Shown here: in pieces, positions 2,623-59,795 of the stretch
How positions within the stretch are numbered: the first letter of the stretch is position 1
Layout of the letters: every line of letters begins with the position of its first letter
DNA from: Epiperipatus broadwayi
Lineage: Eukaryota > Animalia > Onychophora
Reading direction: 5' to 3'
NCBI GenBank assembly: GCA_028023455.1
Contig: JAQFVV010000008.1
Coordinates: forward strand, 15,624,001-15,688,000
Length of the DNA: 64,000 nucleotides
Notes under the pieces: model-generated
Told to the model about the DNA's origin: nothing
The model's input: the letters and a program-made list of their open reading frames with translations, nothing else
The model's database searches: none
Made by a program: the position numbers and the translations under genes

Positions 2623-4503
2623 TGAGCCTGATTGATTTCCAATTCAATGGTTTTATTGCTAAAATTAAAAAGGGAAAACAACTTCATTTTCATTAAATGT
2701 CTAATGCTAAATTTTTTTTATTATTATTTCAAAACACATACGCATTTATATTTTAAAATAGATTATTTAATGTTTATAAAATTGATTTAGAATAGTTTAC
2801 TTTCACTACTTTGTTTATAAAATTGATTTAAAAATACTTTACTTTCACTGCCTGTTTTAATCAAAAAGCTTGCTAATTATATATTCCTGTTGCTTGTATT
2901 TTTAATCATTTTTAAAGTTAATTCTAAAAGTCTAAAAGCGGAGATCTAGTTTTGTATTTGTTATTTTGGATACCCAATAATCCCTGGTTGGAATTCTTAA
3001 ATTAGATTGAGCGGGAAATTAATATTTGCCCTGCAGGAGCTATAGAATTAGAGACTAATGAAAGTTTTTCGCGGGAAATGTAGCAAGGCAAGGATAGCCC
3101 GCCAATTTTTGAGGAGAGAAGAGATGCATTATTGGAGACACACTTGGATTATCGACTGCTAAGAGTCAGATGGTTTTGAATAGCTGTTCAGACATTTAAT
3201 TGCCTGCTAAAAACAAATAATTATTGACAAACTTCGTTGCTGTGCAAGATGTCAAAATCTACCGCTATAGGTTTTGCCATCATTAGAATGTCTTGCTAAT
3301 TTAAACAAAGGATGGACCCACGCCTACCAGCTCTCCTTCAGTCATGCCATGAGCCTCTAAAATAGACACTGCCTCTATCTTGCCGCTGTCAAAGGCCCTG
3401 AAAGATGAACTATTATCAAAAGTGCGCACTTGTCACCAAATCACTAAGACTCTACCTTACCATAAGCTAAACTTTTTCCTATTCTAGCCAGGGTAAATAA
3501 ATTGCATTTAATTAAATCTCCGCTCAATCTAATGATAAATATGTTTTAAAATGGTATTGTTTTTTTTTTAATTATTTATTATCTGTATGTACTCTTTTCT
3601 AGTATTTAAAGTGTGTCTTGGAATCTTAGCTTTAAGATTCCAAGTTTGTTTGCAATTTTCGTTTATCAGGGAGTGCATAAGGTGATTGTATTTTATATGT
3701 TTAATATATAGCTGGTTATTTCGTTAACTATTACAAAACACATTGGCAGTTTTCATAACCTATATTTATTTACCTGCCCTTAGTTGTACAATAAAGAATC
3801 GGTGCACCAAAAAATCTTTAAACATGTTTCGTTTGCGCTGTTTGTGCAAACAACAAAATCTTTTTGCTGGCTATTTGTCAAGTTATTTCTCCGGGTTGTC
3901 TGAAAATAGTCTATTTCTTTCTGGATTATGTAAGATCGTAATCAAATATCTGTTGCTGTCTTGTGGGTGAGATCAACCACATTTACTTTGAATGTAGTAT
4001 TACGCACAGCAGTCCTGCGGCATTTTAACGACAGTAATTAGAATATTACTGCTCAGACGTTCGCGCTGGTACGTTGGTTTCCAGCAGGACAGTAACTGTT
4101 TTATTATCCCTGATTCAGGAAGCTAAAGTTGTTGTTTGTTTTGTAATTTTACAACTGGCCAGCAAGAAGATATTTTCCTAACCATTTCTTCTATTTTAAG
4201 TGAGATAATTTTGTTGCCAAGGTGTTTTATGCCTTCATGTTTGTCGTACTCTTGTGCACTCTCTGGTAAATACGCGTATGTTACTATAAGCCACTTTTGT
4301 ATTCGTGGCTAGATGTCTTCCCTCTATTGCACAACTTTTAATAAAATTAATAAATTGTTTAAACTTAATTTGGCTGACGTTTGTCTTTGTGCTTTGATTT
4401 CTCAACTGTCTAAATAATATTTAAGATATCTTGTTCCTCCCTGAGTGTAGTTCGGTGCCTTTTGATTCGCATATCCTGTCCACCCTAAAATAAATGTCTA
4501 GTT

Positions 4504-7500
4504 GTGATGTGATGTGATGTATTATGGCTTCTCCTTAAACGAAGTCAAGAAAATCTCAGCAATTAAGCCCAGATAAACCTGTTAGCCACTTTCTTTTACA
4601 TTCCCCACTCTAAATTTACCCATAATCTGCTCTATCCCATTTCCACAACATAATTTTTGTCAACTCTATAGCCTTTATATCTAAATCCCCCTTATCTTTT
4701 CCCAAACCTAGCATAAAAACCAATAATTCACTTTCTGTATAATCACTCTTTTCATATTTATTTTTCCACAACTTCATTATATGTACCCTTTCTGTTTTCA
4801 AACATTTACATTCAATTAACAAATGCCTAATATTTTCAATTCCTTCCTTACATAATTTACAAAATAAATCACCCATATTTTTCCATTTACATGTATATTC
4901 TTTTGTAGCTAAAGATCCCGTTCGAGCCTTAAACAATAAACTACTTTCCTTACTATTATCATATATTAACTCACACCTAATATTCTGTTTATTTCTATAT
5001 ATATTTAAACTCTTTTTACTCTCCATACTATTTCTCCATCTCTCTAACTCCCTAGTCTTTATTAATAAATTTATTCTTTTATCCCATTCCTTACTACTAT
5101 AACACTCAATAATCCTCTTAACACAATCATCCCATCTTTTGTACAAATATACTGATATAAATTCTTTATCCAAATCTTTTGCATACCGCATTACCTTTCT
5201 CACCCATCTTGTTACCTGCCCTTTACTCATAACCCAATTAAATACTATTTTAGCTATTCTTTTATTATCCATAAACTGCAATCTACCAAACATTTTCATT
5301 TTACTTTTTGCATCTCTCATATGAAAACTTGACCATCCCATTTCTCCTTGAATTGCCTCCCTTGCTGTCCATACTTCTGCATCCAATGCATGTCTTCCTA
5401 CTTCCCTTTGAGTTTTTTCTAAATAATCTAATATCTTTTTACTAACATATAATGCATCATTACCATATGTTAACCCTGCTACTGCAACTCCTTTCCATAT
5501 AATTCTAGCTACATCATATTTATTATATGAAAATACTGTTAATTTCTTTATCAATCCCTTTCTTTTCTTTGCTTCATTTATCAATTTTTTCTCCCATTCA
5601 TCCAAATAATTTTTCTGATTACTTAAAATAATTCCCAAATAACTATATCTATTCACCACACTTAACTTAATATCTCCCAATAAAAATTCTACATCTTCTC
5701 TTTCCTCAGTATTAACCATCATTATATTTGATTTTTCTTCACTAAATTTAATCCCCATCTCTTTACCCACCCTTGCACATGTCCTCAACATAACTTCCAT
5801 ATCTTCTCTTTTTTCTGCACACAAAAATATATCATCTGCAAAAAAAAGACCTGACAAAATATATACTCCCTTACTACCTATTAACGGTATCTCTATCCCT
5901 CTTCCTAATCTTTCTATTGCTCTTTCCATTTCACTCAAATACAACACAAACAAAATAGGTGACATAGGGCATCCTTGCCTTAGTCCCACACCATTTTTAA
6001 CTTTAATTGATTCTATATTCTCTAATTGATATATATAATAATTATTTTCATATAATTTCTTAATAATATCTATTAAAGCTTCATCCATTCCCAAATTTGC
6101 TAAACTTATCCATAATCTATTTCTATTTACTCTATCATATGCCTTCTCTATATCTATAAAACTCATATATAACTGTTTATCTGCATTCCTACTCATATCC
6201 ATAAGTTGTGTAACTACAAATAAACTATCTCCTATACGCCTATCTAATCTAAAACCTCCTTGCATTTCACCCACTACATTATTCCCTTCCATCCATTTTA
6301 CAACTTTACTAGCCACCATATACGAGAAAACTTTATATAAAACTGATGTTACCGCTATCGGTCTATAATTATTCAACTTTCTATGATCCTTACCCTTTCC
6401 TTTAAATAATAACCTTACTCTTGTATTACTCCAACTACTTGGGAAAACTCTATTATGTGCCATTTTATTAAAACAGGATAATAACTTTACTTTTGCCCTA
6501 TATCCTAAATTCATTACCATCTCTGCTGCCCATCCATCTAAACCTCTTGCCTTCCCACTTTTCAATTTCTTCTCTACCTCATTTAGTTCATTTTCTGAAA
6601 AACTAATATTCCCATTACTATATTCTTTCATATTTTCTAATATTCTATCATTCACATTTAACATCTTTTCTATATTCATTACATAACTATTTAAGATTCT
6701 CTCTAAATCTTCTCTAGAACTACACTCAGTTCCCTCATCATCTAGTAATACTAACTCTCTCTCCCCTACATTTCTCCTTTTAATATAATTCCAAAATTTT
6801 TTACTTCCATCTCTTCCACTTTTATTAATATCCTCCAACAATTTACTATTCAATTTCATTCTCTCTCTATAAATATCTATTTTAGCCAACTTCTTCTTTT
6901 CTAAGTACTTTTCCCATTTAGCATTAATATCTTTTTCACTTTTCTTATTCTTAATAGCACACTTATATTCTCTACATGCTTCTTTCCTTTCTTTTACACT
7001 TTTACTAATTTTAATTTTTTTATTACTTTTATTCTTTTCAATATTCTCACCTAAAACCCTATTTACAACTTTTTCTACTTCCTTACACCAATCCTTATAC
7101 TCATCCCCAACCCACTCTTCCATTATTTCTTCAACTTGTATTTTATACTCTTCCAACTTATTCTTATCATTTACTCTCCATCCACATCTTTCACTATTAT
7201 TTCTACTTTTATTTCTATTCTCCATCACATTACTAACCATTTCAATTACAATGAAATTATGATCACTAGTGCATACTTTTTCTTCATTATCAAAAACCTT
7301 AATTTTCCGTATTTTATTTATTCCCTCTTTCTCTACCAATACATAATCTATTGTGTGAAATATATTATTTCTGGACCATGTGTATTGTCCCTCATAAATA
7401 TTTAATAAATTTCCAATACTCAAATTCACTTTCTGACAAAAATTCTTCAAAAGCTGTCCATTTTTATTATCTACATCATCAATTTCTTCAATATGTCCAT

Positions 7501-7632
7501 TCATATCCCCTATAACCATTATTCTCTTCCCCTTTTCTTTAAAACTTTGTATATCCTTAACTAAACATTCGTATATGTTACTATTCCACTCCAATATAAT
7601 TTGACTATCTCCAGTAGCTATATAAACTATAG
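4504..7632 (-). mobile_element. 5'-truncated non-LTR retrotransposon nested in the gypsy 5' LTR
   Basis: Absent from the 3' LTR; (CATCA)n-type 3' tail (plus strand GTGATGTGATGTGATGT at 4504-4520); ~110-nt 3' UTR; no clear TSD. Confidence 0.95.
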
Positions 7633-14133: not shown

Positions 14134-16078
14134 TGAGCCGGATTGATTTCCGATTCAATGGTTTTATTGCTAAAATTAAAAAGGGAAAACAACTTCACTT
14201 TCATTAAATGTCTAATGCTAAATTTTTTTTTATTATTATTTCAAAACACATACGCATTTATATTTTTGCATTTATATTTTAAAATAGATTATTTAATGTT
14301 TATAAAATTGATTTAGAATAGTTTACTTTCACTACTTTGTTTATAAAATTGATTTAAAAATACTTTACTTTCACCGCCTGTTTTAATCAAAAAGCTTGCT
14401 AATTATATATTCCTGTTGCTTGTATTTTTAATCATTTTTAAAGTTAATTCTAAAAGTCTAAAAGCGGAGATTTAGTTTTGTATTTGTTATTTTGGATACA
14501 ATAATCCCTGGTTGGAATTCTTAAATTAGATTGAGCTGGAAATTAATATTTGCCCTGCAGGAGCTATAGAATTAGAGACTAATGAAAGTTTTTCGCGGGA
14601 AATGTAGCAAGGCAAGGATAGCCCGCCAATTTTTGAGGAGAGAAGAGATGCATTATTGGAGACACACTTGGATTATCGACTGCTAAGAGTCAGATGGTTT
14701 TGAGTAGCTGTTCGGATGTTTAATTGCCTGCTAAAAACTTAAATAATTATTGACAAACTTTGTAGCTGTGCAAGATGTCAAAATCTACCGCTATGGGTTT
14801 TGCCATCATTAGAATGTCTTGCTAATTTAAACAAAGGACGGACCCACGCCTACCAGCTCTCCTTCAGTCATGCCATGAGCCTCTAAAATAAACACTGCCT
14901 CTACCTTGCCGCTGTCAAAGGACCTGAAAGATGAACTATTATCAAAAGTGCGCACTCGTCACCAAATCACTAGGACTCTACCTTACCGTAAGCTAAACTT
15001 TTTCCTATTCTAGCCAGGGTAAATAAATTGCATTTAATTAAATCTCCGCTCAATCTAATGATAAATATGTTTTAAAATGGTATTGTTTTTTTTTTAATTA
15101 TTTATTATCTGTATGTACTCTTTTCTAGTATTTAAAGTGTGTCTTGGAATCTTAGTTTTAAGATTCCAAGTTTGTTTGCAATTTTCATTTATCAGGGAGT
15201 GCATAAGGTGATTGTATTTTATATGTTTAATATATACCTGATTATTTCGTTAACTATTACAAAACACATTGGCAGTTTTCATAATCTGTATTTATTTACC
15301 TGCCCTTAGTTGTACAATAAAGAATCTTTAAACATGTTTCGTTTGCGCTGTTTGTGCAAACAACAAAATCTTTTTGCTGACTATTTGTCAAGTTATTTCT
15401 TCGGGTTGTCTGAAAATAGTCTATTTCTTTCTGGATTATGTAAGATCGTAATCAAATATCTATTGCTGTCTTGTGGGTGAGATCAACCATGTTTACTTTG
15501 AATGTAGTATTACGCGCAGCAGTCCTGTGGCGTTTTAATGACAGTAATTAGAATATTACTGCTCGGACGTTCGTGCTGGTATGTTGGTTTCCGGCAGGAC
15601 AGTAACTGTTTTATTATCCCTGATTCAGGAAGCTAAAGTTGTTGTTTGTTTTGTAATTTTACAACTGGCCAGCAAGAAGATATTTTCCTAACCATTTCTA
15701 TTTTAAGTGAGATAATTTTGCTGCCAAGGTGTTTTATGCCTTCATGTTTGTCGTACTCTTGGGCACTCTCTAGTAAATAGGCGTATGTTACTATAAGCCA
15801 CTTTTGTATTCGTGGCTAGATGTCTTCCCTCTATTGCACAACTTTTAATAAAATTAATAAATTGTTTAAACTTAATTTGGCTGATGTTTGTCTTTGTGCT
15901 TTGATTTCTCAACTGTCTAAATAATATTTAAGATATCTTGTTCCTCCCTGAGTGTAGTTTGGTGCCTTTTGATTCGCATATCCTGTCCACCCTAAAATAA
16001 ATGTCTAGTTCTTATTTTCGGACTAGTGGCGCCCCCGGAGTTTGTATATGCGAATCTCAAAATCTTTCTCCCATTACA
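14134..16078 (+). repeat. 3' LTR (1945 bp)
   Basis: Direct repeat of the 5' LTR, roughly 3-4% diverged by eye; has a 14-bp tandem duplication near 14254-14281 and a 16-bp deletion near 15325 relative to the 5' copy; ends CCCATTACA. Confidence 0.95.
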
Positions 16079-24082: not shown

Positions 24083-26567
24083 ATGAAGTGGTAGATTTTT
24101 ATATGGATGTACAAAAGGCTTTTGATCAGAGTAAACAACATTTTAAAATTGTTATGGGAGACTTTAATGCTAGAATTGGTAGACAAATGAAAGATGAAAT
24201 TGCTGTAGGTAATTTTGGTTATGGTAATAGAAATGAGAGAGGACATAGATTTGTGGAGTTTGCAGAAAAAGAAAAACTTTATATTATGAATTCATTTTTT
24301 GAGAAAAATGTTAAAAGGAAATGGACATGGAAGCATCCAAATGAAGGTACAGCAGAATTGGATTATATTTTGACTAACAGGAAATACATATTTCAAGATT
24401 GTAATGTTCTTAATAAATTTAACACAGGAAGTGATCATCGATTAGTAAGGTGTAAATTACATGTTAATGTAAAACTAGAGAGACAAAAATTATTAAGAAA
24501 AACAATATTTACAGTTGATATTCCTAATCTTCAGAAACATTCTAATGAATTTAAATTAGAACTTACAAATAGGTTTCAAGTGTTAGGAGATTTTGAACAT
24601 GATTCAGATTTGAATGAAATTAATATGAAAATAACTGATACACTTTTAAAAACTGCAACAAAGATAGCTGGTAGAAAAAAGCAGCAATTGACTAATAAAA
24701 TTTCTACTGAGACTAGAGAATTTATGAAGAAAAGAAGGAATATGAAGATATACAAAAATGATGTATTAAAAAGAATTGAATATCTCGAATTTTGTAAAAT
24801 GGTACGGAAAAGAGTTGAAAATGATATAAGAAAGTATAACTGTGAAATAGCAAGGAAAGCTGTAGAAGAAAATAAAAGTCTCAAGAATGTTAAACAACAT
24901 TTTGGTATTGGTAGGAAATTTATATCTGCAATAAGAAAAAAAGATGGAATTATTACTAAAAAGAGAGATGACATCATGAAGTTGGTAGAAGATTTTTATC
25001 AAGAATTATATAGTAATAAAGAACAAGTACCTCCTATATCTATTACATCTTCTGAATTGCCCAGAATTTTAAATGAAGAAGTGAGACATGCAATTAAATG
25101 TATGAAGAAAGGAAAGGCTCCAGGAAATGATGGAATTATAATTGATATATTAAAAGAAGTAGGTGAAGAAATAGAAACAATTTTAGCAAAGTTATATACC
25201 AAATGTCTAAATGATAATGATGTACCGGAAGATTGGAAGAATGCAGTAATAATATTAATATTTTAAAAAGGTAATAAAGAAGATATTAGAAATTACAGAC
25301 CTATCAGCCTTTTATCAGTTTTATATAAAATTTTTACCAAGATAATTACAACTCGTCTACAGAGAACTTTGGATTTCCACCAACCAAGAGAACAAGCTGG
25401 ATTTAAAAGTGGTTTTAGTACAATAGATCATATCCAGGTATTGAGAGAAGTCATAGAAAGGACAAATGAATATGAGTTGTCATTATGTTTTGGATTTGTA
25501 GATTATGAAAAGGCATTCGATTCTATACACATTTCTTCAGTGATTAAAGCATTGGATCATCAAGGTATAGATCCAGGATATTGTCATATTTTAAAGAATA
25601 TTTATAAAAATGCAATAGCAACAATTAGATTACATAATGATACTGGAAAAATCAACATTGAGAAAGGTGTAAGACAAGGTGACTCCATATCTCCAAAACT
25701 TTTTACAGCAGTGCTGCAAGAAGTATTTTGTGGATTAAAATGGGAAACTAAAGGAATGAAAGTAAATGGAGAGTATTTAAGTCATTTAGATTTTGCAGAT
25801 GATGTAGTTGTTTTTGCAAATAATGCTTCAGAGCTGCAGGAAATGTTGCAGGAGTTAGCAGATGAAAGTAGAAAAGTAGGACTAAAGATAAATGTTAAAA
25901 AGACTAAAGTAATGTTTAATCGATTTGCTCAAAATATGAAAATAAAGATTGATTATGAAGAATTAGAAAAAGTTAACAGTTACAAATACCTTGGTCAGAT
26001 TATTAATACAGATGGAAACATAATGGAGGAAATTAATCATAGAATTAAACTTGGTTGGAGTGCTTTTGGTAGAAATAACTTGATACTAAAAGGAAATATG
26101 CCTATGTGTTTGAAAAGAATGGTTTTTAACAAATGTGTTTTACCAGTTCTTACTTATGGATCTGAGACTTGGACACTTAATAGAAGAGCAATACAGAGAC
26201 TTCAGACCACTCAAAGGAGTATGGAGAGATGTATGTTGGGAGTAACAAGAAGAGATCGAAAACGCAATGTATGGGTAAGACAACAAACAGGTGTTACTGA
26301 CCTTATTGAAAAAATTAAAAGATTGAAATGGAGTTGGGCTGGACATATTGCTAGAAGAAATGATAATAGATGGACAATTGAAATTTTAAACTGGAGTCCA
26401 AGAGATTGTAAAAGACCCAGAAAGAGACCACATGTGAGATGGATGGATGAAATAAGAAAATGTGCAGGGGTGTTGTGGAAAAGAGAAGCTAAAGATCGGA
26501 GAAGATGGATTAAACTTGGAGAGACCTTCATCCTGCAGTGGAATGATAATGGTTGATGATGATGATG
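24083..26567 (+). mobile_element. Young 5'-truncated RTE-clade LINE with a 12-bp TSD
   Basis: TSD AACCAAAAAGTG at 24071-24082 and 26568-26579; (TGA)n tail at 26554-26567; very short 3' end as in RTEs. Confidence 0.95.
24088..26556 (+). pseudogene. RTE ORF (endonuclease + RT) broken by a single in-frame TAA at 25264-25266
   Basis: ORFs 24088-25266 and 25369-26556 share a frame; the read-through is [19 protein letters not shown] (expected IFKKG). Motifs GDFNA, LDYIL, GSDHR, KGVRQGDSISPKLF, FADD, LTYGSETW, WAGHIARR. Confidence 0.93.
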
Positions 26568-42374: not shown

Positions 42375-45300
42375 TGTGTTTGTAAAAATACCTACATTGA
42401 AATTCAATAAGTCTCTTGGACTCCAGAAAAAGCAAAGAAAATATATTAGAGAAATATATTTTTAAATCGCTAACTAATAAGGGTTTAATTAATGATTACA
42501 TTTGCATAGAATGTAACAATGGAAAATATTTATATAATTTGTGATAAGAAAATTGCACCTGGTAAATGCCAAGTAATATTTGCTAATTACAAATATTTCT
42601 TGATACAATAGAAATTGAACCTACTAATTAAAAATGCAAAGATGAAAACAAGACTGTTAACAATCAAGGATGAATCCTGGATTGCCGGAGGTCAAACTGG
42701 GGATATAAATAGTTTGTGCAGCAAAGTGCATTGTTCTCATAATGAATTGTTGAAGGGAGATTTTAATGGACAAAGCTTAAGTGATGGTGCAGTGCTCTAA
42801 TACGAAGCCAACGTGATCATGAGCAGTAGCTGAACAGAGTCAAAGTATTTTGAAAACTGAGACTGGAGGAAACTGTCCAGAAAACAACCACAGTGTTAAG
42901 GGCATCATAGGATGTGAATCTTAAGTGAACTATATATATATATACTATGTTGTGCGTATCAATAACTTTTCACTATTAACTACATTTTACCATTTATTGT
43001 TTTATTTATCATATTATTTATTGATTCATTTGTTGGTATTCTAAGTGCTTGTATTTGAATACATAACAAGTGAATAGTGAATAAGTTTTAAAAAGTTAAC
43101 CACAGGGATAGAGAAAATGTCGCTAGGTCAGTCAGTAATAACGGAATTCAACTTGAGTAATGTAAGTCATTGGCTGTGGTATGCCATGCAGTTGGAATTT
43201 TTTTTTTTTTATTAAATGGAATTAAAGATAACAAGAGAAAGATAGCCACTTTAATGTGTATGTTGGGATTAAAAGTCATTGACATTATAAATAAGTATTT
43301 TGACATAGCCATAGCAGAAAGAACGAATAGCGTATGAAGAAATAATCAACAAGCTGAACGAACATTTTAAACCCAGACTATCAAGACACAGTGCCTGATT
43401 ATCATTAAGAAACAGGAGGCAATGGAAAGGTGAATTGATAGAACAGTATGGAATCACATTAAGAGAACTGGCTAAAGATTGTGGATATGGCGATTATGTA
43501 GACGAAATTCTGTTAGACTAATTAATCTGGGGCATGTCGGAGGACAGACTCTGACAAAACCTTCTTGCCAATGCAGAATTAAATTTCAAAGAAGTCATTA
43601 AAAAGGGAGTGGCCCACGAACTCATCATGTAACAGGTGGTGCTGTTTAGTAACGAAAATTACAGTAAAACAAAAACAGTTTATAAGACTGAGTGTGAAAC
43701 AAATTAAAAATAGTTTCTTTGCACACAAAGGTTAAAAAAAAAATTAAGAGTTTTTGCTGTGGAAAACCAGGACACATCAAAAAAGACTATACATTTAAAG
43801 ACGAATGATGCAAAATCTGTAAGCAGAAACATCACCTAGCACGAATGTGTAGAAAATCACAGAAAGTGAATCAAGCAAGACAATCTAACAGAGGCACAAA
43901 TGATAGCATTTACAACACTAACTATGCATCAACCAAGGGGCAGAGAAAATTTACATTGCAGCTACAACCTGATAACAAAAAAAAAGACATGGAAATTCAC
44001 AGTGGGTCAGGAATATCAATAATCTCGGAGAAACTGTGGAAATATATTAGAGGATGTTGAAATGCATAAAACATCAATCAGGGTGGTAAATGTAAGCAGC
44101 AACATAGTAAAATTAGTAGGCTCCGACATAGTACTGATAAAATACTACAATAAAACGATGAGTTTACCAATATACATAGTAAAAAAAAATATCAGTCAGT
44201 TAATAGGACACAACTAGTTCAAGCACATAGGTATAAGCATTAGTGTTAGGAATAGGACCAATTTGCAAGGATGACACTTCAAACACAAGATCAGAAAACC
44301 GCGACAAATAAATATGAATAAATTGCAAACTGAAAATAAGGATTTAAAAGAAAGAGTGAATAGTTTTCAGTTCCAGTTACAATGACAATGAAGTGACCGG
44401 TAACATGGAAGATAATGAAATGAGTGCATCATTGCAGGGTCGGAATCAATGGTGAAGTTACTAGAAAAGAAGTTAGAGGACTTAGAATCCAAAAATGGTG
44501 AATTATGTAATGAATTGGAGCAGAAATTGCTAGAAAATCAGGATTTACAGCAGAATAATAATCAGCTGCTTAAAGAAGCAGAATAGTAGAATGAAAAAGT
44601 AAAAGAATTATCAGAACAGGTAGCGTTTTGGCAGCAGTATGAAATGGAACTACAAGAAAAGATGTCTGAAAGTGAAAATTAAATGGATACTTTTAAAGAC
44701 CTTTTAGAAGAAGAGCAAACTTTAGACAGTGAATTGCCAGACACACAAACTGAAGAACAAGGAAAAACCCAGAGTTTCTCCAATTGGGAGAAAAAAGCAC
44801 CCAAGCTGGTAAAGGAAAATAAGAGTCTAAATAATTTTCAAGGTTACATTTATTAATCTGAACAAGGGTTTTTTTCTGGAGTGGGGGAGGTATTGTGTTT
44901 GTAAAAATATGTACATTGAAATTCAATAAGCTTTTGGACTTAATGAAAATATATTAGAGAAATATATTTTTAGATCACTAACTGATGAGAGTTTAATTAA
45001 TAGATTAAATTTGCATAGACTAACAATGGAAAATATTTATGTAATTTGTGATAAGAAAATTGTGTTTGGTAAATGCCAGAAAATATTTACTAATTACAAA
45101 TATCTCTTGATACAATAGATGTTAAACCTACTAATTAAAAACGCAAAGATGAAAACAAAACTGATAACAATCATGTATGAATCCTGGATTGCTGGAGGCC
45201 AAGTTGGGGTATAAATAGTTTGTGCAGCAAAGTGCGTTGTTTTCATTCCAATGGATTTACCAAGTGAACTGTTGGTGGGAGATTTTAATGGACAGTAGCT

Positions 45301-45587
45301 GAAAGAGGCTTAAGGGAAAGTGCAGCATTCTAGTGCTAAGCCAACATGATCATGAATAGCAGCTGACCGAACCAAAGTATTTTAGAAACTGAGGTCAGAG
45401 AAAACTGCCAAGAAAATAGTTAGAAAGTTAAGTACATCGTGGGAAGTGAACTATATATATATATTGTGTTGTGTGTATCAATAACTTTTTCCTATTAATT
45501 ACATTTTACCACTTACTGTTTTATTTGTCATATTATTTATTGATTCATTTGTTAGTATTCTGAGTACTTGCATTTGAATGCACAACA
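42375..45587 (+). mobile_element. Old internally deleted Mag-type LTR element (element 2): LTR 42375-43068, decayed gag, protease stub, coiled-coil remnant, PPT, LTR 44894-45587
   Basis: Direct repeats TGTGTTTGTAAAAAT...ACA, 694 bp each, about 15-20% diverged by eye. Gag starts at ATG 43117 (MSLGQSVITEFNLSNVSHW), with two CCHC remnants near 43755-43850. MEIHSGSGISIIS at 43989 (catalytic D to H). PPT GGAGTGGGGGAGG at 44878-44890. No RT, RNase H or integrase core; no TSD recognised. Confidence 0.85.
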
Positions 45588-47437
45588 TTAAAAAAACCAA
45601 CATTTTACAATAATGAATAATTTTAGTAGCCAACACATGCCCATTTCAGGTCATAGTTTTAATAAAAATAATGATTTAATATACAGGTTATTGAAACAGT
45701 TCATATTGTATACTACCTCTTAAACATAAATGGGACCCATACTATAGATTGTTTCTTTAAATTTTAACTCTTTTTAAAAACATACAATATTAATATTGAT
45801 AATTTTTTTTATTTTACTAACCTTGCTGATTTGCCAACCTTATGCTATTTTACTTTTTTTTTTTATACATGGACATTGTGATCTTATTTTTAATTGTGCC
45901 ACAAACTAAACTAATCAACTTCATAAGACAAAATACACCCATTTAAAATTATAACAATACTATCCAAAAATAAGTCAAAAATTAACATCTAATAGTTTCA
46001 CTATTAAAACTTCTTAGATGAAATCAGAAGTTTCTGTATGCGGAAACTATGTGTCTATAAACCTTGTTAATCAAATTAAACATTCTTTCTCTCTAAAATC
46101 CTTGACAATTCTGTAAACTCATCTTACTACTTCCATTTTATTATTAATAAATTATTCTATCAAAAATGATATAGTCCCTTTTCTTCTCCTACTTCATTAA
46201 TAATAATCATTATCTCCAATACTATTGACATAATTTTTCCTGTTTTTTTTTTTTTTTGTTTTAAGATCTTATATTAAAAAAATAAAGGTTCTGTATTATC
46301 ACTCCGATATCCACATCTCAATCCAAATTTTTGAAAATCAGAATGCTAAAGCATCTATAGAAATCTCATTGTACTATAATCAAATTCCAATAAGATGGCT
46401 TGTATTTTGATACTACCTGCCCTTTGACAAGTCATCATTATGTTCTATGAGACTTCAGCAAGTACTCTTGATTAAACACTTACTATATAAGATATCAGGA
46501 GGAAATATTGGTTAGACACTTACTATAAATCATTTCACTGTATGCCAACTGTGGGCCTCTTGCATAGTCTCAGTTAAGGATTCAATAACTCAGAAAATAA
46601 TACATAATTCAAAAGATTGAGACCAATGATATTTTCTAATCCTTACCCTTCTAATAAAAAAGACAACTAAAAAAGAAGAATAAAGACACCAAATGGAAGC
46701 CACTGTCAAAGCATGTCTATAAGCTGATTAGCCACAAGATGATAAGTGCCTAGCAGAGACTATTTTTGCTTTAAGGTGAAATTTCAATAAAAGATCTGCA
46801 GTATTCAAGGTCAAGGTATAAACATATATAATGTATAATGAGTATGTAAATAATAATAATTGTATAAATATAACGAATATGTAAAAGTAATAATAAATGT
46901 ATAAATGTAGAATAAAAGTAATAACTGTAATGTATAATAAATATGTAAAATAACTGTATAGTAATTAAGAATAACGATTGTGTAAAATTACAATGTTATT
47001 AAATCGTAGAAAGTTGTATAATAATAGAAAGCCCAGCTGACCTTATAGGGTCAGAAAACTATGTAAAATACAATATATGGTGAGAAACGTAAAAATACTG
47101 TGTGTATGTGAAAACGTAAGTGAAAACACCATATATGGTTAGGAATGTAAAAGACTCCAGAAGTCTTGAGGGGTATATAAACCCCCATAAACTAAACTAA
47201 TTGTTCTGATGTTCTGAGTATGTTCTGAGTTTTAATTATGAGTCAGAGACTCCTGCCTCTGTAAGTCGAAAGCAGGACTAGGGTATTTTATGCAGGTCAA
47301 CCACGACCTTTTATTATTTTATTACGCCTTATAATAGGCGATGTATATAGTTAAAATTATCCGTATTAAACTATAATCTTGCCATCTCAATTCTGCCTTT
47401 GTCCATTTATTTACCTGCGAGCATAAGACACTGCAAT

Positions 47438-47662
47438 TGGTGCAGTAATGACAGGAATAAAACCTGACAGCATATCGGCGCAGTAACGACAGGAATAGAA
47501 TCACTGCAATTGGTGCAGTCGGCACAGGAATCGAATCAAAGAAAGTGGCAGTTAATACAGGAACGGAACTGCCTTAAAAATTGGCTCGGTCATCAAAGGA
47601 TCGAATCTGCAAATAATTGCCTAAACAGCAAGCTGAGACAAAGCGTAAGTGGATTCGAATCA
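47438..47662 (+). repeat. Tandem array of PBS-like units, ~35-bp period
   Basis: Units start at 47438, 47476, 47511, 47546 and 47582 (weaker at 47618 and 47650), each TGG/CGG...CAGGAAT(C)GAATC-like. Confidence 0.75.
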
Positions 47663-47670
47663 ATAGAGAA

Positions 47671-48642
47671 ATGGCGAGCATATCGCAAGTTTCTATTTGC
47701 GAATTTAATGTACAAAATCCGAGTGACTGGCCACTATATGTTCAGAGGATAAAAAACTACTTTATACTAAATAGTATTACAGAGAATACTGTAAAAGTAG
47801 CCTCATTACTTTGCTTTGCAGGCCTGAGGGTAATCGAAATCGCGAACAATCTATGTGGAAATTTGCCGGAGACACAGAAATATGATGAGCTCGTAACACA
47901 GCTAAATGAATATTTTAATCCCCAGCCATCCAAGTTTATTGCTCGATTGCACTTTAAAAGCAGAAGGCAAAGAAAGAATGAGAAAATAAAAGAATATGAC
48001 ATTGGTTTAAGAGAGATGGCAAGGCCATGCCTTTATGGTAAATATTTAGAAGAAGCCCTTCTAGAACAATTATTATTCGGAATAATTGATGACCAGTTTA
48101 GACAGATCTTACTGGCAATAAAAGATGTAACCTACGAAGAAGCTATCAGACGTGCAACAGCTTATGAATTGCAGCTTGACCAAGCGAGAGAGTTCAGAAG
48201 TTTCACGAAAACAGAACCACTTCAAACCACAATATTTAAAATGTTTGGAGTTAGACCCCAAACCGATAAACAAATTAAATGTTTTCGATGTAGAAAAATC
48301 GATCACAAAGCCCGTGATTGCAGTTTACCAGAAACTGAAAGTTATCGGAAAATAACCAAGTATCCCAAAAGATGGCACCACCATACAAAACCGAACAGAG
48401 AATTTACGTGCGAAGCGATGGAAAATAGCTACATAAAAAGTGCTACTATAGACGAATCTGATCAAATTATGATAAAAAAAAAAAAAATTGACATAGAATC
48501 GCAAGTCAAAAATAATTACCCCAGCTTGTTCAAAAAAGAACCAGGAAAACAAAAAACCTCGCCTGTAGAAATAAAGTTAAGAGACAGAGAAAAACCTTTT
48601 GTAACAAAACCGCGGATCGAAACCACCATCAACAAACCGTAA
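47671..48642 (+). CDS. gag: Intact Gag (capsid + one CCHC) fused in frame to an RT N-terminal stub
   Basis: MASISQVSICEFNVQNPSDWPLYVQRIKNYF...CFRCRKIDHKARDC, then YPSLFKKEPGK...VEIKLRDREKPFVTKPR (pre-RT segment); the ATG at 47671 is preferred to the TTG at 47617. Confidence 0.88.
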   Translation: MASISQVSICEFNVQNPSDWPLYVQRIKNYFILNSITENTVKVASLLCFAGLRVIEIANNLCGNLPETQKYDELVTQLNEYFNPQPSKFIARLHFKSRRQRKNEKIKEYDIGLREMARPCLYGKYLEEALLEQLLFGIIDDQFRQILLAIKDVTYEEAIRRATAYELQLDQAREFRSFTKTEPLQTTIFKMFGVRPQTDKQIKCFRCRKIDHKARDCSLPETESYRKITKYPKRWHHHTKPNREFTCEAMENSYIKSATIDESDQIMIKKKKIDIESQVKNNYPSLFKKEPGKQKTSPVEIKLRDREKPFVTKPRIETTINKP

Positions 48643-50745
48643 ATTGGCGAAGTACAACAAAGACCGCCAGCAACCGGCAAGAACTAGAAATCTCAAGGAC
48701 TATGTTAGGTGAAAAACCATACTTCTGGAGAGGGGGAGGAGTGCAGTATTCAAGGTCAAGGTATAAACATATATAATGTATAATGAATATGTAAATAATA
48801 ATAATTGTATAAATATAACGAATATGTAAAAGTAATAATAATTGTATAAATGTAGAATAAAAGTAATAACTGTAATATATAATAAATATGTAAAATAACT
48901 GTATAGTAATTAAGAATAACGATTGTGTAAAATTACAATGTTATTAAATCATAGAAAGTTGTATAATAATAGAAAGCCCAGCTGACCTTATAGGGTCAGA
49001 AAACTATGTAAAATACCATATATGGTGAGAAACGTAAAAATACTGTGTGTATGTGAAAACACCATATATGGTTAGGAATGTAAAAGACTCCAGAAGTCTT
49101 GAGGGGTATATAAACCCCCATAAACTAAACTAATTGTTCTTATGTTCTGAATACGTTCTGAGGTTTAATTATGAGTCAGAGACTCCTGCCTCTGTAAGTC
49201 GAAAGCAGGACTAGGGTATTTTATGCAGGTCACCACGACCTTTTATTATTTTATTACACCTTATAATAGGCGATGTATATAGTTAAAATTATCCGTATTA
49301 AACTATAATCTTGCCATCTCAATTCTGCCTTTGTCCATTTATTTACTTGCGGGTCATAAGACACAATAAGATCATATCTTTTAACTCATCTATAATATTT
49401 AAATATGTATAAGTTAGATAAAATTTATTGTATTAATATGATAAACTGTAAAATTAATCAAAAATTACAAAATGAAAGTGCCTTATGGCACTCAAACTAA
49501 AGTTATTTTTTTTCCAATTTAAATATAATCTTTATGTTCATTTACTTTTAAATATTTTATTAAATTTTGATAACTACAGAACTTTACATTCTGGATTTTA
49601 AAAAAATTATTTATCTATAATGCATATAAAAAAATTTAAATACTATTTCAATGCAAAATGTATTTATAATTAGACATATAAAGCATATTAGTATTAGGTA
49701 TATTTCAGTGGAAAACAGGGTCAAATCAGGAATTATATAAAAATAATTCAATTCATGAGGGACTTTTGAATTGATATTGTGCACATTAATGTGACAAGCA
49801 ACCAAATTAAAAGACTTTTTTTAATAGCTGAGATGTTTCTTTTTTCTTTTTTTAAAAAATACACTTCAAAGTCTTTCTAAATTATAGTTAGAAATCCCCA
49901 AGAATATTTATGAAGATTATTTTGATGATTAAAAAAATAAAAAAAGTTGTTTTAGTTAGTTTCTAGATTTAAATATTAGTTCTTGAATGTGTATAAAGAT
50001 TATAGAAATAACTTTGTCTCAAATATGAATAAATAATGTTCATACTAATAATATCAAATAGGATGTGTTTGAGTAAATATGAGGTTCCAATAAATTGCTG
50101 AAGATGCTTTTACAACCAGAAAACCATTTAATAAGTGGGTATCTTGATATTATAAACATAATTCTTAAAAAAAGCATTCTAACTAAAATTACAACACTAT
50201 TTCTTTGTGTTTGAATAATGCCCAAAGTTTAATGCTGATATTATTTTATTTTTCCATCGCAGAATTTTTGAATAAAAGATGAATATTACCAAAAGCTCTT
50301 CAAGTACTTAAATAAAATGAAGTGAGTGAGCAAATGCAATTTGGAATAAGTTATTTCTAGCAAATAAAGTTAATTTCCTTATAAATAAGCAAAGTTTATG
50401 CAATAAATTATTAGTCATTAAATCTTAATAGAAACAATGGTTATCTTCTTTAAAGCTCCGTCAAAAATCTTTAAATAAACATATTATAATATACAATGAA
50501 TGAATATAAAAAAAAAATTTTAATTAAAGATATATGTTGCAGATCTAGTAGAAAAGAAGCTGGATAATTAAGAATGAATGTGATTATTTAGCTATTATAA
50601 AGACCATGCCAAATCTGTTTAATTAAAGCATTTGTTAAGTTATCAGCATTGTTATATTATCACCAATACATTATTACATTTGAATCAATTTATAAAGAAA
50701 AATAGAGAATATCAATAAAACAAACAATAACTGTATAAAACTCAC

Positions 50746-55019: not shown

Positions 55020-57550
55020 ACAATAGATGGCATAAAGATATGAAGTAAAAAGTATGCTGCTGAAACAACAATGAGTAAACTAAAAACATAAGGTCATGTA
55101 ATAAATTGTCTTTGATCATATCAGGTGCCATTTTAAAATTGCTATGGGAGTCTTTCATGGTAGAATTGCTAAATGATTAAAAAATGAAAGTGCTGTGGGT
55201 AAACTGGATTATGGCGAGAAAAATGAAAGAAGACACAGACTAGTGTAATTCACAGAAAAAAACAACAACTGTGTATTTTTTCTTTGAGAAAAATGTTAAA
55301 TGGAAATGGATGTTAAAGCATCCAAATGAAGATATAGCAGAAATGGATTTTATATTAATTAAACAAAATATGTATTTCAAAATTGTTATGTTTTTAATAG
55401 ATTCAATACAAGAAGTAGTCATTGATTAGTGAATGGTATATTATTTATTAATGCAAAACTAGAGCTAAAAAAAGATTAAGAAAGTCAAAATTAACAGTTG
55501 ATATTCCTAATCTTCACAATCATTTCAATGAGTCTATTTAAAATTTGCAAATCATTTTAAAAATATTAACAGATTTTAAGATGGTTCAGATTTTAATTAA
55601 TCAATAAGAAGAGATATAAGAAGAGATAAATGATATACTATTAAGACTGTAAAAAAAGGTATCTGGTACAAAAATGCAGCAATTGACCAATAAATTTTCT
55701 ACTGAGACAAAACAATATATGAAGAAAAAAAGGAATATGAATTTATATAAAAATAATCTATTAAGAAGAATTTAATATCTAGAGTATTGTAAAATCGTAT
55801 GAAAAAAAAAATTATATAAAAAAATAATTGTGAATTAGTAAAAAGTTATTTCAACAATAAAAAAAAAAAAAATTGAGACTAAAAGAAGAGATCATATCAT
55901 GACATATGTGAAAGATCTCTATAAAGAATTATATAATAATAAAGAACAAGAAAACAGAGTATATCTATAGTTATCATATCATCTGAATAGTCCAGAATTT
56001 TAAATAAAGCAAGATATGCAATTAAATTTAAATGTAGAACTTGTTCCAAAGTTAATATGATTGCCTATGTAACAGAATGCAATCTTTTGTTGTAAATCTA
56101 TGTAACATTTGTTTAATAAAATTCTTTGAAACATAAATTTATAAAGAAGAGAAAAGCTCCACTAAATGCTAAAATTATAATAGATATCTTAAAAACAGAT
56201 AAAGAAATAGGGATATTGATGGCAAAACTATATAGCAAATGCATCAACTGATTGGCAGAATGCAATGATAATATTGATATTTAAGAAAGGTGATAAAGAA
56301 GATATTAGAAATTACAGATCTACCAGTCTTTAAAACAGGCAAAACTCTCCATACAGTAGTGCCACTCAGTGCCAGCCAGAGTAATCAATGGATGCCAGCA
56401 TAAGAAATGGTGATCATGTGATGTTTAGTGGTTATCTACCTGTCTTCTATCAATCCTATACAAAATCTACCAAGATAATTACAAATGGTTTACAATGAAC
56501 TTTGGATTTTAACCAACTAAAAAAATAAACTGGATTTAAAAGTGGTTTTAACACAGTGGATCACATTCAAATATTGAAACAAGTTATAAAAAGCACCAAT
56601 AAATTTAAGTTGTCATTATTATTTGGATTTGTAGATTATGAAAATACATTTGATTGTATGAGTATTTCTATGATGATTAAAGTACTGGATCATCAAGATA
56701 AAGACTCAGAATATTATCATTTTCTGATGAACAGTAGTGATTAGATTTCATAGTGATACTAAGAACATTATGCAGCAGCATAATTCCATATCTCCAAATC
56801 TTTTTACATCAGTTTTACAAAAAGGATTTTGTGAATTAAAATGGGAGGCTAATGATAATAAAAGTAAATGGAGATTATTTAAGTTATTTAGATTTTGTAT
56901 ATAATGCAGCTGTTCTTCTTGAAATGTTGTAAGATTTATCAGACCAAAACAAAAAAGTAGGACTAAAGATAAATAGTAAGAAGACTTAAGAAATGTTTCA
57001 TGATTTATCTCAGTGGATAGCAATGATTAAGAATCATGAATTAGAAGAATACCAATACCTTGTTCAGATTATTGATATAGATGGAAACATAATGGATGAA
57101 ATTAATCATAAAATTAATATTGGATAGAATGCTTTTGGTAAAAATATGTCTATGCATTTAAAAAGAAAGATTTTTAATAGATGTGTTTTAGTTCTTATTA
57201 TGGTCTGAGACTTGAATACTTAACAGAAAAATAATACAAATACTTTAAACCATTCAATGAAGTATGGAAAAATGTATGTTAGTAGAAGAAAGAAGAGATT
57301 GAAAATGAAATATATGATGAGAGAAAGAACACATATTACTGAAAAAATTAAGAGGCTAAAATGCAGCTAGATCAGATATATTGATAGAAGAAATAATAAT
57401 AGATGGAATTTTAAGTCTTAAACTGGATCCCAATAGATTATAAAAGATTTAGAAGAAGCTTTATGTTAAATAAAGGGATGAAATAAGGAAAATTTGCTGC
57501 TATAACCTTCATCTTGCCATGGATTGATAATACTTGAAAATAATAATGAC
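55020..57550 (+). mobile_element. Decayed RTE-clade LINE, same family as 24083-26567
   Basis: Colinear nucleotide similarity throughout, e.g. GGATTTAAAAGTGGTTTTA, GATATTAGAAATTACAGA, ATAGATGGAAACATAATGGA and the 3' ACCTTCATCTTGC; residual ORF 56556-56744 (DHIQILKQVI...FGFVDYE). Confidence 0.85.
56331..56433 (-). mobile_element. 103-bp family-A derivative inserted in the decayed RTE with a 13-bp TSD
   Basis: ATCTACCAGTCTT (56318-56330) and ATCTACCTGTCTT (56434-56446) flank TAAAACAGGC...GGATGCCAG + CATAAGAAATGG...GTGGTT, which match 41896-41962 and 42180-42214. Confidence 0.8.
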
Positions 57551-58713
57551 ATTGATTTGCTTTATAACTAGTTTACCATATTTATAACCTCTGATTTTAT
57601 GTTCTTACCATATAAAAATATTATCATGTCTATTACAGGGTGCGAAAGACTTAATTTAATTGCAATACATCTGGCTGGTTAGCAATTACATAAAGTTGAT
57701 TATCATTGTATGCATTAACTTCTTTAATTATTCTAATGAAATAGTATTTCCTACTTATAACTAGTACTAAATTGTACAAGCCAAATGATATTTAAACATC
57801 AATGTGTCAGTCGCAATTCCATTTAATTGACAAAATTGAGATTTACTTTTTTATCTCAAAATAGAAACCCGACTTTTCCATAATAATTCATAAATTTTTA
57901 AATATGATTGAAATAAAAAAAATATGCTGCTATAACCTTCATCTTGATATGGATTAATAATGCTTGAAAATAATAATGACATTGATTTGCTTTATAACTA
58001 GTTTACTATATTTATAATATCTGATTTTATGTTCTTACCATATTAAAATATTATCATGTTTATTATAGGTTAAGTAAGACTTTAATTTAATGCCAATACA
58101 TCTGGCTGGTTAGTAATTACATAAAGTTGATTATCATTGTGTGCATTAACTTTTTTAATTATTTTAATGAAATAGAATTTCCTACTTGTAATTTGTACTA
58201 AATTGTACATGATACTTACATAAAGCTAAAACTTTAGTACATACGCCTTGAGTGCTTAATTTTAGCAAGAGAGACCTCTACAAATCATAACACGAGATTC
58301 GACTTTATAAAGATAATAGGGACCCCCTCTTAGCTCTAACCTATTTTTCTTAATTATATAGGCAAATCTAAAGCATTTTGATTTGGGAGCATGAAGCTAA
58401 TAAATTCTTCACTGATTAAGTCCACTATTTCTATTAAACATTAACATTCGCAAAATCTTTCGATTTACAACAAGTCAATATTCAGATATTAAATTTAGAA
58501 ATATTTTGAATCAATTTAAAGTTATAAATATTAATTCTTATTAAGCGCAATGTCAACATTAATATTTATAAATTGTACATGCTAAATGATGTTTAAACAT
58601 CAATGTGTCAATCACAACTCCATTTAATTGACAAAATTGAGATTTACTTTTTTACCTCAAAATAGGAATCTGACATTTCCATAATAATTCATAAATTTTG
58701 AAATATGGTTGAA
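57490..58713 (+). repeat. Tandem duplication of a ~425-bp unit (57490-57912; 57917-58713), second copy interrupted
   Basis: GCTGCTATAACCTTCATCTTG...TTCCATAATAATTCATAAATTTT occurs twice; the unit starts in the RTE 3' end. Confidence 0.85.
58212..58568. mobile_element. 357-bp insertion with a 13-bp TSD
   Basis: TAAATTGTACATG at 58199-58211 and 58569-58581; the insert is absent from the first tandem copy. Confidence 0.75.
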
Positions 58714-59795
58714 AATTTATTCACCATTATTATAGATAGAAGATATTCATCAACAATTCACTTCTGTTTATAGTTATTGAATTACAATGTTGGAAGAAAA
58801 AAACTACAAATGCCTTCTTAATGGAAAGTGTGTTGTTCTTTTTTTAAATATATGGTATTTTTAATATACGAGCCTTCATTGAAAATTCTGTAAGAAATAA
58901 TGCTACACGTTAAGTCTTGGAATGTTTTCAGTGCTTAATTAACTTTTTTGAAATAGTGCAAAATGTTTGACTTTGCAACAATGTTATTCCACCCATCAAT
59001 TTCAGTAAAATTATTTTACCACTATCACTAAACTATAACCTTAATTTAATTTAAGGATATTGCTTTAGCCATTGTTCTTAATAAGAAATGCTTCACTATG
59101 CATTTACTGTTTTATATAAATACCATAATTTAACACTGATTTTACTTAATCAGAAGTCATTTTTAAATAGACTGTAAAACAGTAAATTTAACATTTTCTT
59201 TACATGAAAACATGATTTCTATAATAAGGTTTAGTTCAACGCTTTATATTGAAATTAATTATGCATTAAATTCAGACATTATTCTTTTAAATATGCTTGA
59301 CATATATAATATCATTAAAAATTGTTCAACTCCTAAACATAATATAAATTCAATAAATTATATGTATAAATATATTAAAAAATGAATATTCCATTAATAA
59401 TATACATATTCTGTAAATAAACATTATATATAATGATCAGATATACATTGTAACATAATAATCATATGTATATATATATATATGTATTCAAAAACTTAAC
59501 TCAGGAAAATCCAAATAAAGAAATGCATTTTTTTTAAATTAGAAGTTGTAATAGAAACATTGATAATTCATTATCATAATAGCCATTTTACTTAAATTTT
59601 GGACTCAGTAATATATTGTACATATGTAATAAAAAATGTGTTCAAACATATAGATATGATTACTATTTCATAGAATATATTTTAAATGTAGTAAATAAAC
59701 ATTTTGAAATCTTAAAAATTAAAATAAATAAATTCAAAATTCATTCTGTTCATATAAATACTATTATTATTAAAAATAAAAAAAAGTATAATTAC

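Follow-up and report, generated by a model that had tools for sequence, protein, structure and literature searches.

A leader array with a putative extended tRNA-Ser primer-binding site as its unit in a cut-down Ty3/gypsy-type retrotransposon of Epiperipatus broadwayi

Tandem arrays in the leader are common in LTR retrotransposons, and their origin is usually obscure. The locus described here raises the question of whether the origin of such an array can be read from its repeated unit, and of whether the units still have a role or are relics. The locus lies in a stretch of 64,000 nucleotides of the onychophoran Epiperipatus broadwayi (contig JAQFVV010000008.1, positions 15,624,001 to 15,688,000 of the forward strand), which is referred to below as the window and to which all coordinates refer. 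Within it, a short array stands between a 5' LTR and a gag reading frame, and a first-pass annotation, made from the letters of the DNA alone, had interpreted this array as a series of diverged primer-binding sites accreted behind a young LTR.

The host element and its leader array

The element (46797-49367, ~2.6 kb, internally deleted) is, judged from its sequence features, a cut-down Ty3/gypsy LTR retrotransposon (Table 1). Its gag ORF is intact, i.e., without stops or frameshifts, and has a Pfam zf-CCHC match and a weak Retrotrans_gag match. In alignment with a full-length relative, the ORF covers gag and a short stretch before RT, and the comparison indicates that pol has been almost wholly lost via at least two large deletions. 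The domain order typical of Ty3/gypsy elements (RT, RNase H, integrase zinc domain, and integrase core) is found in distant relatives at 26-36% gag identity. The two LTRs, which were also seen as repeat families D1, D8, and D14 in the window, share 95.9% identity in a blastn alignment of 636 columns (12 mismatches, 3 gaps); they are moderately diverged, and the earlier description of the LTR as young does not hold. A TATA-like box is present in the 5' LTR near 47171-47187. The element is flanked by a candidate 6-bp target-site duplication, which fits only given a small deletion in the tip of the 3' LTR relative to the tip of the 5' LTR; alternative duplications of 4-5 bp would require several substitutions. 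A 4-bp duplication is known from the animal Helenus families, which are apparently mobilised by Gypsy elements (PMC10886601).

Table 1. Features of the element and of its leader array, with the likeness of each unit to the complement of the tRNA-Ser 3' end
Feature	Position	Strand	Matches to tRNA-Ser complement	Shuffles	Contiguous pairs from 3' end	Remark
Left candidate target-site duplication AAGATC	46791..46796	.				hexamer repeats after 3' LTR
5' LTR	46797..47437	+				starts TGCAGT; ends ACTGCA, then AT
Unit 1 and spacer	47438..47475	+	21/28	0/2000	9	adjoins LTR, the canonical primer-binding-site position
Unit 2	47476..47510	+	20/28	0/2000	0	head CGG, not TGG
Unit 3	47511..47545	+	22/28	0/2000	14	best-preserved tRNA-Ser complement; own LTR-tip copy directly upstream
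Unit 4	47546..47581	+	19/28	240/2000, not significant alone	4	most decayed; head with 2-nt loss
Unit 5	47582..47616	+	22/28	1/2000	4	best retention of TGGC head and T-loop/T-stem part
Truncated sixth unit	47650..47661	+				TGG fused to T-loop complement; 9 nt upstream of gag ATG
gag ORF	47671..48642	+				323 codons; CCHC zinc knuckle; runs into short pol remnant
Polypurine tract	48727..48741	+				15-nt purine run directly 5' of 3' LTR
3' LTR	48742..49367	+				tip slightly shorter than 5' LTR tip
Right candidate target-site duplication AAGATC	49368..49373	.				read directly from sequence

The head-to-tail array between the LTR and the gag ATG was confirmed: all five units are present where the first-pass annotation had placed them and with the spacing that it had given (38/35/35/36), and they are accompanied by a significant truncated remnant. 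Pairwise global alignment of the five units yielded identities of 62-81%, units 1 and 2 being the closest pair (81%), and each of the nine unit pairs tested scored better than 3000 random segments of the window and 3000 shuffles (p<=0.001). The same controls support the relatedness of unit 4 to the other units (p<=0.001). Tandem Repeats Finder alone reports just 3.1 copies with a period of 35 (47429-47538), which suggests that units 4 and 5 are real, more decayed members of the array. For the remnant, the best score of the surrounding region (47641-47670) against units 1-5 was reached by 7 of 2000 shuffles, and the sole exact occurrence of GGATTCGAA in the 64-kb window lies inside it. A seventh unit at 47617-47649 was considered and rejected, its likeness to the units being not significant.

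It had also been claimed that the tip of the LTR recurs before unit 3, and this proved correct. The tail of unit 2 (47502-47510) is identical to the final 9 nt of the LTR and forms part of an 18-nt exact repeat (47429-47446 and 47502-47519), which comprises the 9-nt LTR tip and the first 9 nt of a unit; the junction within this patch forms a 6-bp hairpin. Under free drift at 75% identity, an exact 18-nt patch at units 1 and 3 has a chance of ~0.005, and the patch suggests either short-patch homogenisation or constraint on the junction between LTR tip and site. A higher-order repeat of two units was rejected, the 73-nt blocks being 59% identical outside the 18-nt patch. The best-conserved blocks of the units are the head (TGG, GCAGT) and A-AGGA, both of which fall within the 18-nt site, and the motif ACAGGAA is near-invariant across units 1-4 and more conserved than neutral decay would predict. 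In addition, the last ~25 nt of the LTR are weakly like the unit tails (a score as high arises in 39-52 of 2000 shuffles, p ~0.02).

Likeness to the tRNA-Ser 3' end and the search for relatives

Reference tRNAs were retrieved with a pattern based on the tRNA-sense sequence of unit 3, with a gap of 0-2 nt where the unit lengths differ and one purine wobble. This pattern was scanned against a metagenome collection, and tRNAs were called by ARAGORN in the matching loci. Among the 124 pattern matches, 39 are located exactly at the 3' end of tRNA genes, namely 34 eukaryote-type tRNA-Ser genes (AGA, TGA, CGA) and five bacterial tRNA-Arg(TCG) genes, and several more are tRNA-Ser genes cut off by contig ends. 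The shortest gap version accounts for 39 called tRNA genes in 55 matches, as against 0 in 69 for the longer versions, the matches of which are scattered over mostly GC-rich contigs. The reference tRNA-Ser 3' end (L007:1980-2004 with the post-transcriptional CCA) comes from metagenome contigs chosen with the unit-3 pattern and is not a host tRNA; the region aligned with the units is the complement of its 3' 28 nt.

The part of this complement covered by the units comprises the CCA, the acceptor strand, and the whole T arm of tRNA-Ser. The proposed resemblance to the complement of a tRNA 3' end, up to and including the T arm, is borne out, with 19-22 of 28 positions matching and a Ser-like character. 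When set against shuffled controls with the metagenome tRNA-Ser as reference, the resemblance is significant for units 1, 2, 3, and 5, whereas unit 4 does not stand out from its shuffles. The match of unit 3 is partly circular because the tRNA-Ser genes were picked with the unit-3 pattern. This does not apply to the match beyond nucleotide 18, since the last five bases are absent from the search pattern; this part of the complement, which corresponds to the T loop and the 5' strand of the T stem, agrees with the units well above chance (0 of 5000), and unit 5 reaches a local alignment score of 8 of a possible 10 there. On the T-arm part, a bacterial tRNA-Trp from the by-catch scores nearly as high as tRNA-Ser, and the assignment to Ser rests mainly on the acceptor strand retained in unit 3.

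In terms of pairing, the contiguous stretches of unit 1 and unit 3 each include one G-U pair, and the predicted dG18 values are -30.8 kcal/mol for unit 3 and -21.8 kcal/mol for unit 1, compared with -38.4 kcal/mol for a perfect site. For every unit, at most one of 500 shuffles does as well as the RNA duplex predicted with the tRNA end. By its complementarity to the metagenome tRNA-Ser, unit 1 is the candidate primer-binding site beside the 5' LTR; it lies where a primer-binding site is expected but makes a weak predicted site, and the best predicted site is unit 3.

Four of the five units start with TGG, the complement of the CCA end, and none of the retrieved eukaryote-type tRNA-Ser genes encodes CCA, which together argue that the units derive from a primer site. 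ARAGORN and Rfam detected no tRNA gene in the 64-kb window and no Rfam family in the array, and the leader did not resemble the 5' 57 nt of tRNA-Ser. An origin from a tRNA gene, a SINE, or a tRNA pseudogene was rejected on account of the missing 5' tRNA part and the presence of the CCA complement.

No further copy of the family was found in the 64-kb window or, by exact-protein look-up, in protein-linked assemblies, and a pattern combining LTR tip and site retrieved no copy from the viral or metagenome collections. A word-index protein search with gag produced no match, and the viral collection contained no gag relative; an exhaustive protein search returned relatives at <=38% identity only. 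An array is absent from all five distant gag relatives (L122, L123, L189, L190, and L001), four of which carry a single site beginning TGGCGACG, with a decayed version in L001; the site in these relatives is one for a tRNA other than tRNA-Ser. In a sixth distant locus (L191), the upstream region contains no recognisable site. When the tRNA-Ser site complement was compared with the viral collection, 64 of the 65 hits were due to chance, in GC-rich phage contigs, and a second tRNA-Ser variant gave no hit in that collection.

The viral collection did contain a complete Ty3/gypsy element, IMGVR_UViG_3300034181_000070 (hereafter L172), in which the 18-nt site is perfectly complementary to the tRNA-Ser 3' end used above. 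Directly behind this site come 6.4 copies of a 16-nt unit, each of which closes with the final 6-9 nt of the site. Like the element studied here, L172 is thus tRNA-Ser-primed and has a tandem array right after the site that re-uses part of it; unlike the units of the window's array, however, those of L172 lack the TGG head and the T-loop part. The gag of L172 is just 24% identical to that of the window, which indicates that the two arrays arose independently.

Origin of the array and alternative explanations

The pattern of changes shared by the units bears directly on their origin. When the units were aligned jointly with the tRNA, all five retained 10 of its 28 positions and at least three retained 9 more, and together the units preserve 27 of the 28 positions, different units keeping different parts. 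At 4 of the 28 positions, at least three units have the same non-tRNA base, and 2-3 columns are filled in at least four units yet missing from the tRNA. A surplus of 2 nt, which is common to all units, sits between the acceptor and T-stem parts; it misfits the standard 7-bp acceptor and 5-bp T stem and is absent from the real tRNAs in the scan. The shared surplus and the shared non-tRNA states point to descent from one ancestral module rather than to separate captures. Moreover, the units differ by 19-38%, compared with 4% between the LTRs, which indicates that the array is older than the present insertion, as the first-pass annotation had argued.

We therefore consider it probable, at about 0.6, that the array represents an old duplication of one primer-binding site, which is now a relic with at most two units able to bind the primer. 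The ancestral module would have consisted of ~9 nt resembling the LTR tip, an extended tRNA-Ser primer-binding site (~28 nt), and a short spacer, the site presumably reaching beyond the customary 18 nt to take in the T loop and T stem. One such extended site may have been duplicated head to tail several times, likely through misaligned template switching in reverse transcription or through DNA replication slippage, so that the array would be a 35-38-bp minisatellite in the transcribed leader. The duplication would have taken place before the present copy inserted, the units would then have decayed independently, and later short-patch homogenisation, or constraint on the junction, may account for the 18-nt patch of units 1 and 3. 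Only unit 1, by its position, and unit 3, by its complementarity, look able to bind a primer, and the remaining units are most likely relics that just lengthen the leader. Indeed, the overall fold of the leader is no better than that of shuffles (z = -1.1), and fold prediction for the array revealed no hairpin common to the units, which fits relics rather than a conserved RNA structure; such a structure was rejected on the same two grounds. Unit 4 forms a 7-bp hairpin of its own (z-score -3.0). With one family copy in hand, we infer inheritance, copy-number variation, and neutrality from a single copy.

The first-pass annotation had favoured a different origin, namely iterative accretion by mis-registered second-strand transfer. 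In such a process, each unit would have been written from the primer tRNA, either by mis-registered plus-strand transfer or by read-through, and the array would constitute an ordered record of priming. Some observations are in line with this: the units do not stop at nucleotide 18, in agreement with read-through of the primer, the 18-nt patch at unit 3 corresponds to the expected 3' end of plus-strand strong-stop DNA, and in L172 the terminal bases of the 18-nt site close every 16-nt unit. However, serial capture from the tRNA would not lead one to expect a 2-nt surplus and four other non-tRNA positions shared among the units, nor a surplus that never occurs in real tRNAs (0 of the 69 longer pattern matches). 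It is also at odds with units 1 and 2, which are the most alike and share changes away from the tRNA, and with the tRNA likeness (21, 20, 22, 19, and 22 of 28 in units 1-5), which shows no proximal-distal decay gradient, so that neither the proposed accretion nor a polarised record of priming is upheld; we regard serial capture as very improbable. The exact LTR tip before unit 3, which is the best tRNA-Ser complement, also permits the view that the border between LTR and leader can slide. Unit 3 would then act as an alternative primer site, producing LTRs that are 73 bp longer and have the same terminal bases, and the array would both cause and record shifts of the border. Modules of tip and site might in this way permit more than one start of reverse transcription with proper ends, with the border moving by whole units over evolutionary time and the array, together with the unit-like tail of the LTR, as its trace, and L172 would imply that this is recurrent; we rate this proposal, too, as quite unlikely. 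The weak unit likeness of the last ~25 nt of the LTR looks as if an older unit had been absorbed, but this likeness is weak, both LTRs of the present copy stop before unit 1, and the judgement is made from one family copy.

The other two explanations concern a role rather than an origin. The units might have been selected as a platform that binds tRNA-Ser or its 3' fragments and that serves primer recruitment, packaging, or, as a cluster of decoys or targets, the interplay with silencing fragments. The predicted pairing of every unit with the tRNA-Ser 3' end is far above that of shuffles, the head and the CAGGA block, which are conserved best, lie inside the 18-nt site, and 3'-tRNA fragments are known to silence LTR elements via the primer-binding site (PMC7472051, PMC12853362). 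Nonetheless, the heavy decay of the units, four of which have only 0-9 contiguous 3'-end pairs, the defective state of the present copy, and the single site in the five more distant gag relatives argue against such a platform, which we consider unlikely. The variant put forward in the first-pass annotation, a platform for priming by multiple tRNAs, is unlikely because all units trace to one tRNA type. It might also be supposed that the units are binding sites for host DNA- or RNA-binding proteins, i.e., an enhancer or insulator array in the leader by analogy with the Su(Hw) sites of Drosophila gypsy, in which case the likeness to tRNA would reflect origin only. The near-invariance of ACAGGAA in units 1-4 would suit this supposition, and regulatory arrays of leader repeats are known in ZAM and Tirant (PMC5408687); however, this motif belongs to the tRNA complement itself, and a protein-binding array appears highly doubtful.

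Relation to known systems and significance

With regard to its position, the array resembles those of ZAM and Tirant, which also have head-to-tail leader repeats between the primer-binding site and gag and are of Ty3/gypsy type. The ZAM leader contains 2.3 copies of a 307-bp repeat, and that of Tirant 2-6 copies of a 102-bp repeat (PMC5408687), the repeat number of Tirant differing between copies. However, the repeats of ZAM and Tirant (102-307 bp) do not stem from the primer-binding site and are regarded as captured host sequence, whereas here the 35-38-bp unit corresponds to the primer-binding site. More generally, repeats in retrotransposon UTRs can seed satellites (PMC9659126).

The inclusion of the T-arm complement in the unit invites comparison with leaders that contact the primer tRNA outside the 18-nt site. 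Such contacts are made by the boxes of Ty1 and by the bipartite site of Ty3. In HIV-1, the primer activation signal is a part of the leader that pairs with the T arm of the primer tRNA (PMC1865047). All three systems resemble the present one in that the leader is complementary to the T arm of the primer besides its 3' end; their extra contacts, however, are single-copy and stand apart from the site, whereas in the present array the T-arm complement directly continues the site, and the module as a whole recurs. Modification of tRNA position 58 is thought to halt reverse transcriptase in plus-strand synthesis (PMC1785368), and the extension of the units past this position suggests that either the primer was read through when the ancestral site was copied or selection favoured a longer duplex with the tRNA. 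Furthermore, LTR elements are subject to silencing by 3'-tRNA fragments that act via the primer-binding site (PMC7472051, PMC12853362).

Sequence related to tRNA is also present in the Helenus TRIMs, which are non-autonomous LTR elements and some of which are tRNA-Ser-primed (PMC10886601). In Helenus, however, it is a tRNA-like polymerase III promoter in sense orientation, located in the LTR and not complementary to the element's own primer-binding site (PMC10886601), whereas the units in the window are antisense, include the CCA complement, correspond to the 3' 28 nt only, and lie in the leader. In the literature, coverage of which was incomplete, no description was found of an array with the primer-binding site itself as its unit. 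We conclude that the array is an unusual form of the known tandem repeats of retrotransposon leaders, the unit being a putative extended primer-binding site.

What the locus means beyond description is limited by the fact that it is represented by one defective copy. Nonetheless, this is a leader array whose origin can be read from its unit, and the repeated unit appears to be a primer-binding site whose complementarity to tRNA-Ser takes in the T arm as well. Should the sliding of the LTR border, which we regard as quite unlikely, be true, the independent array of L172, which is seeded by its primer-binding site, would make such sliding a recurrent property of tRNA-Ser-primed Ty3/gypsy elements. 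If copies of the family vary in unit number or in the end of the LTR, the family would constitute a natural record of strand-transfer errors and, in addition, a naturally occurring example of a leader in which 3'-tRNA fragments have several targets.

Primer sites in the LTR element and its relatives

The hexamer that opens the LTR (46797-46802) recurs inside the primer-site head (region 47430-47446). Because of this shared hexamer, the inverted terminal repeat of the LTR and the site head can form a 6-bp hairpin, which is found again where units 2 and 3 of the array meet. Among the five loci with distant gag relatives, four (L122, L123, L189 and L190) carry a single site starting TGGCGACG, and the fifth, L001, carries a decayed form of it. 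Thus, two things set the family in the window apart from these relatives: its primer type and its array.

The 3' end of tRNA-Ser (T-arm and acceptor) is also present in three contigs of 39-40% GC (L072, L076 and L119); ARAGORN makes no tRNA call on the part upstream of this match, and these sequences may represent a tRNA-Ser-derived repeat.

Coordinates of repeats, elements and primer sites
Feature	Location	Remarks
Tandem repeats, ~430 bp	window 57479-58714	89-92% identical; families D10, D11, D13
Direct repeats, ~1.75 kb	window 2742-4510 and 14268-16010	94-99% identical, 11.5 kb apart
LTR pair, second short element	window 42514-43068 and 45021-45587	88-89% identical
Non-LTR retrotransposon ORF, 992 codons	window 4616-7594	minus strand; endonuclease, RT, zf-RVT
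Another non-LTR retrotransposon, two adjoining ORFs	window 24088-26556	endonuclease, then RT
Single site	L122:290-312	starts TGGCGACG
Single site	L123:2846-2860	starts TGGCGACG
Single site	L189:32-43	starts TGGCGACG
Single site	L190 about 2385-2400	starts TGGCGACG
Decayed site	L001 about 3930-3945	TGGCGACG type
tRNA-Ser T-arm and acceptor 3' end	L072:695-713	
tRNA-Ser T-arm and acceptor 3' end	L076:1179-1197	
tRNA-Ser T-arm and acceptor 3' end	L119:11621-11639	
Primer site and array region	L172:581-710	IMGVR_UViG_3300034181_000070

Other repeats in the window

Another short LTR element, with a degenerate gag-like interior, lies at 42508-45590, and neither a TGG-type site nor an array is found downstream of its 5' LTR. 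Between the ~1.75-kb repeats lie plus-strand fragments of protease, RT and integrase-SH3, and a site-like TGGCGCCCCCGGAG occurs 16 nt past the right repeat. The non-LTR retrotransposon with the 992-codon ORF is apparently an insertion just past the left repeat, and a partial copy of the other non-LTR element (72-79% identical) lies 31 kb downstream of it, at 55468-56731.

A leader array in an unrelated element

L172 is a complete Ty3/gypsy element with overlapping contig ends. Its primer-binding site, an exact 18-nt tRNA-Ser complement, leads directly into a tandem array of 16-nt units (6.4 copies), and every unit repeats the final 6-9 nt of that site. Here a leader array has arisen from the primer site, independently of the array in the window.
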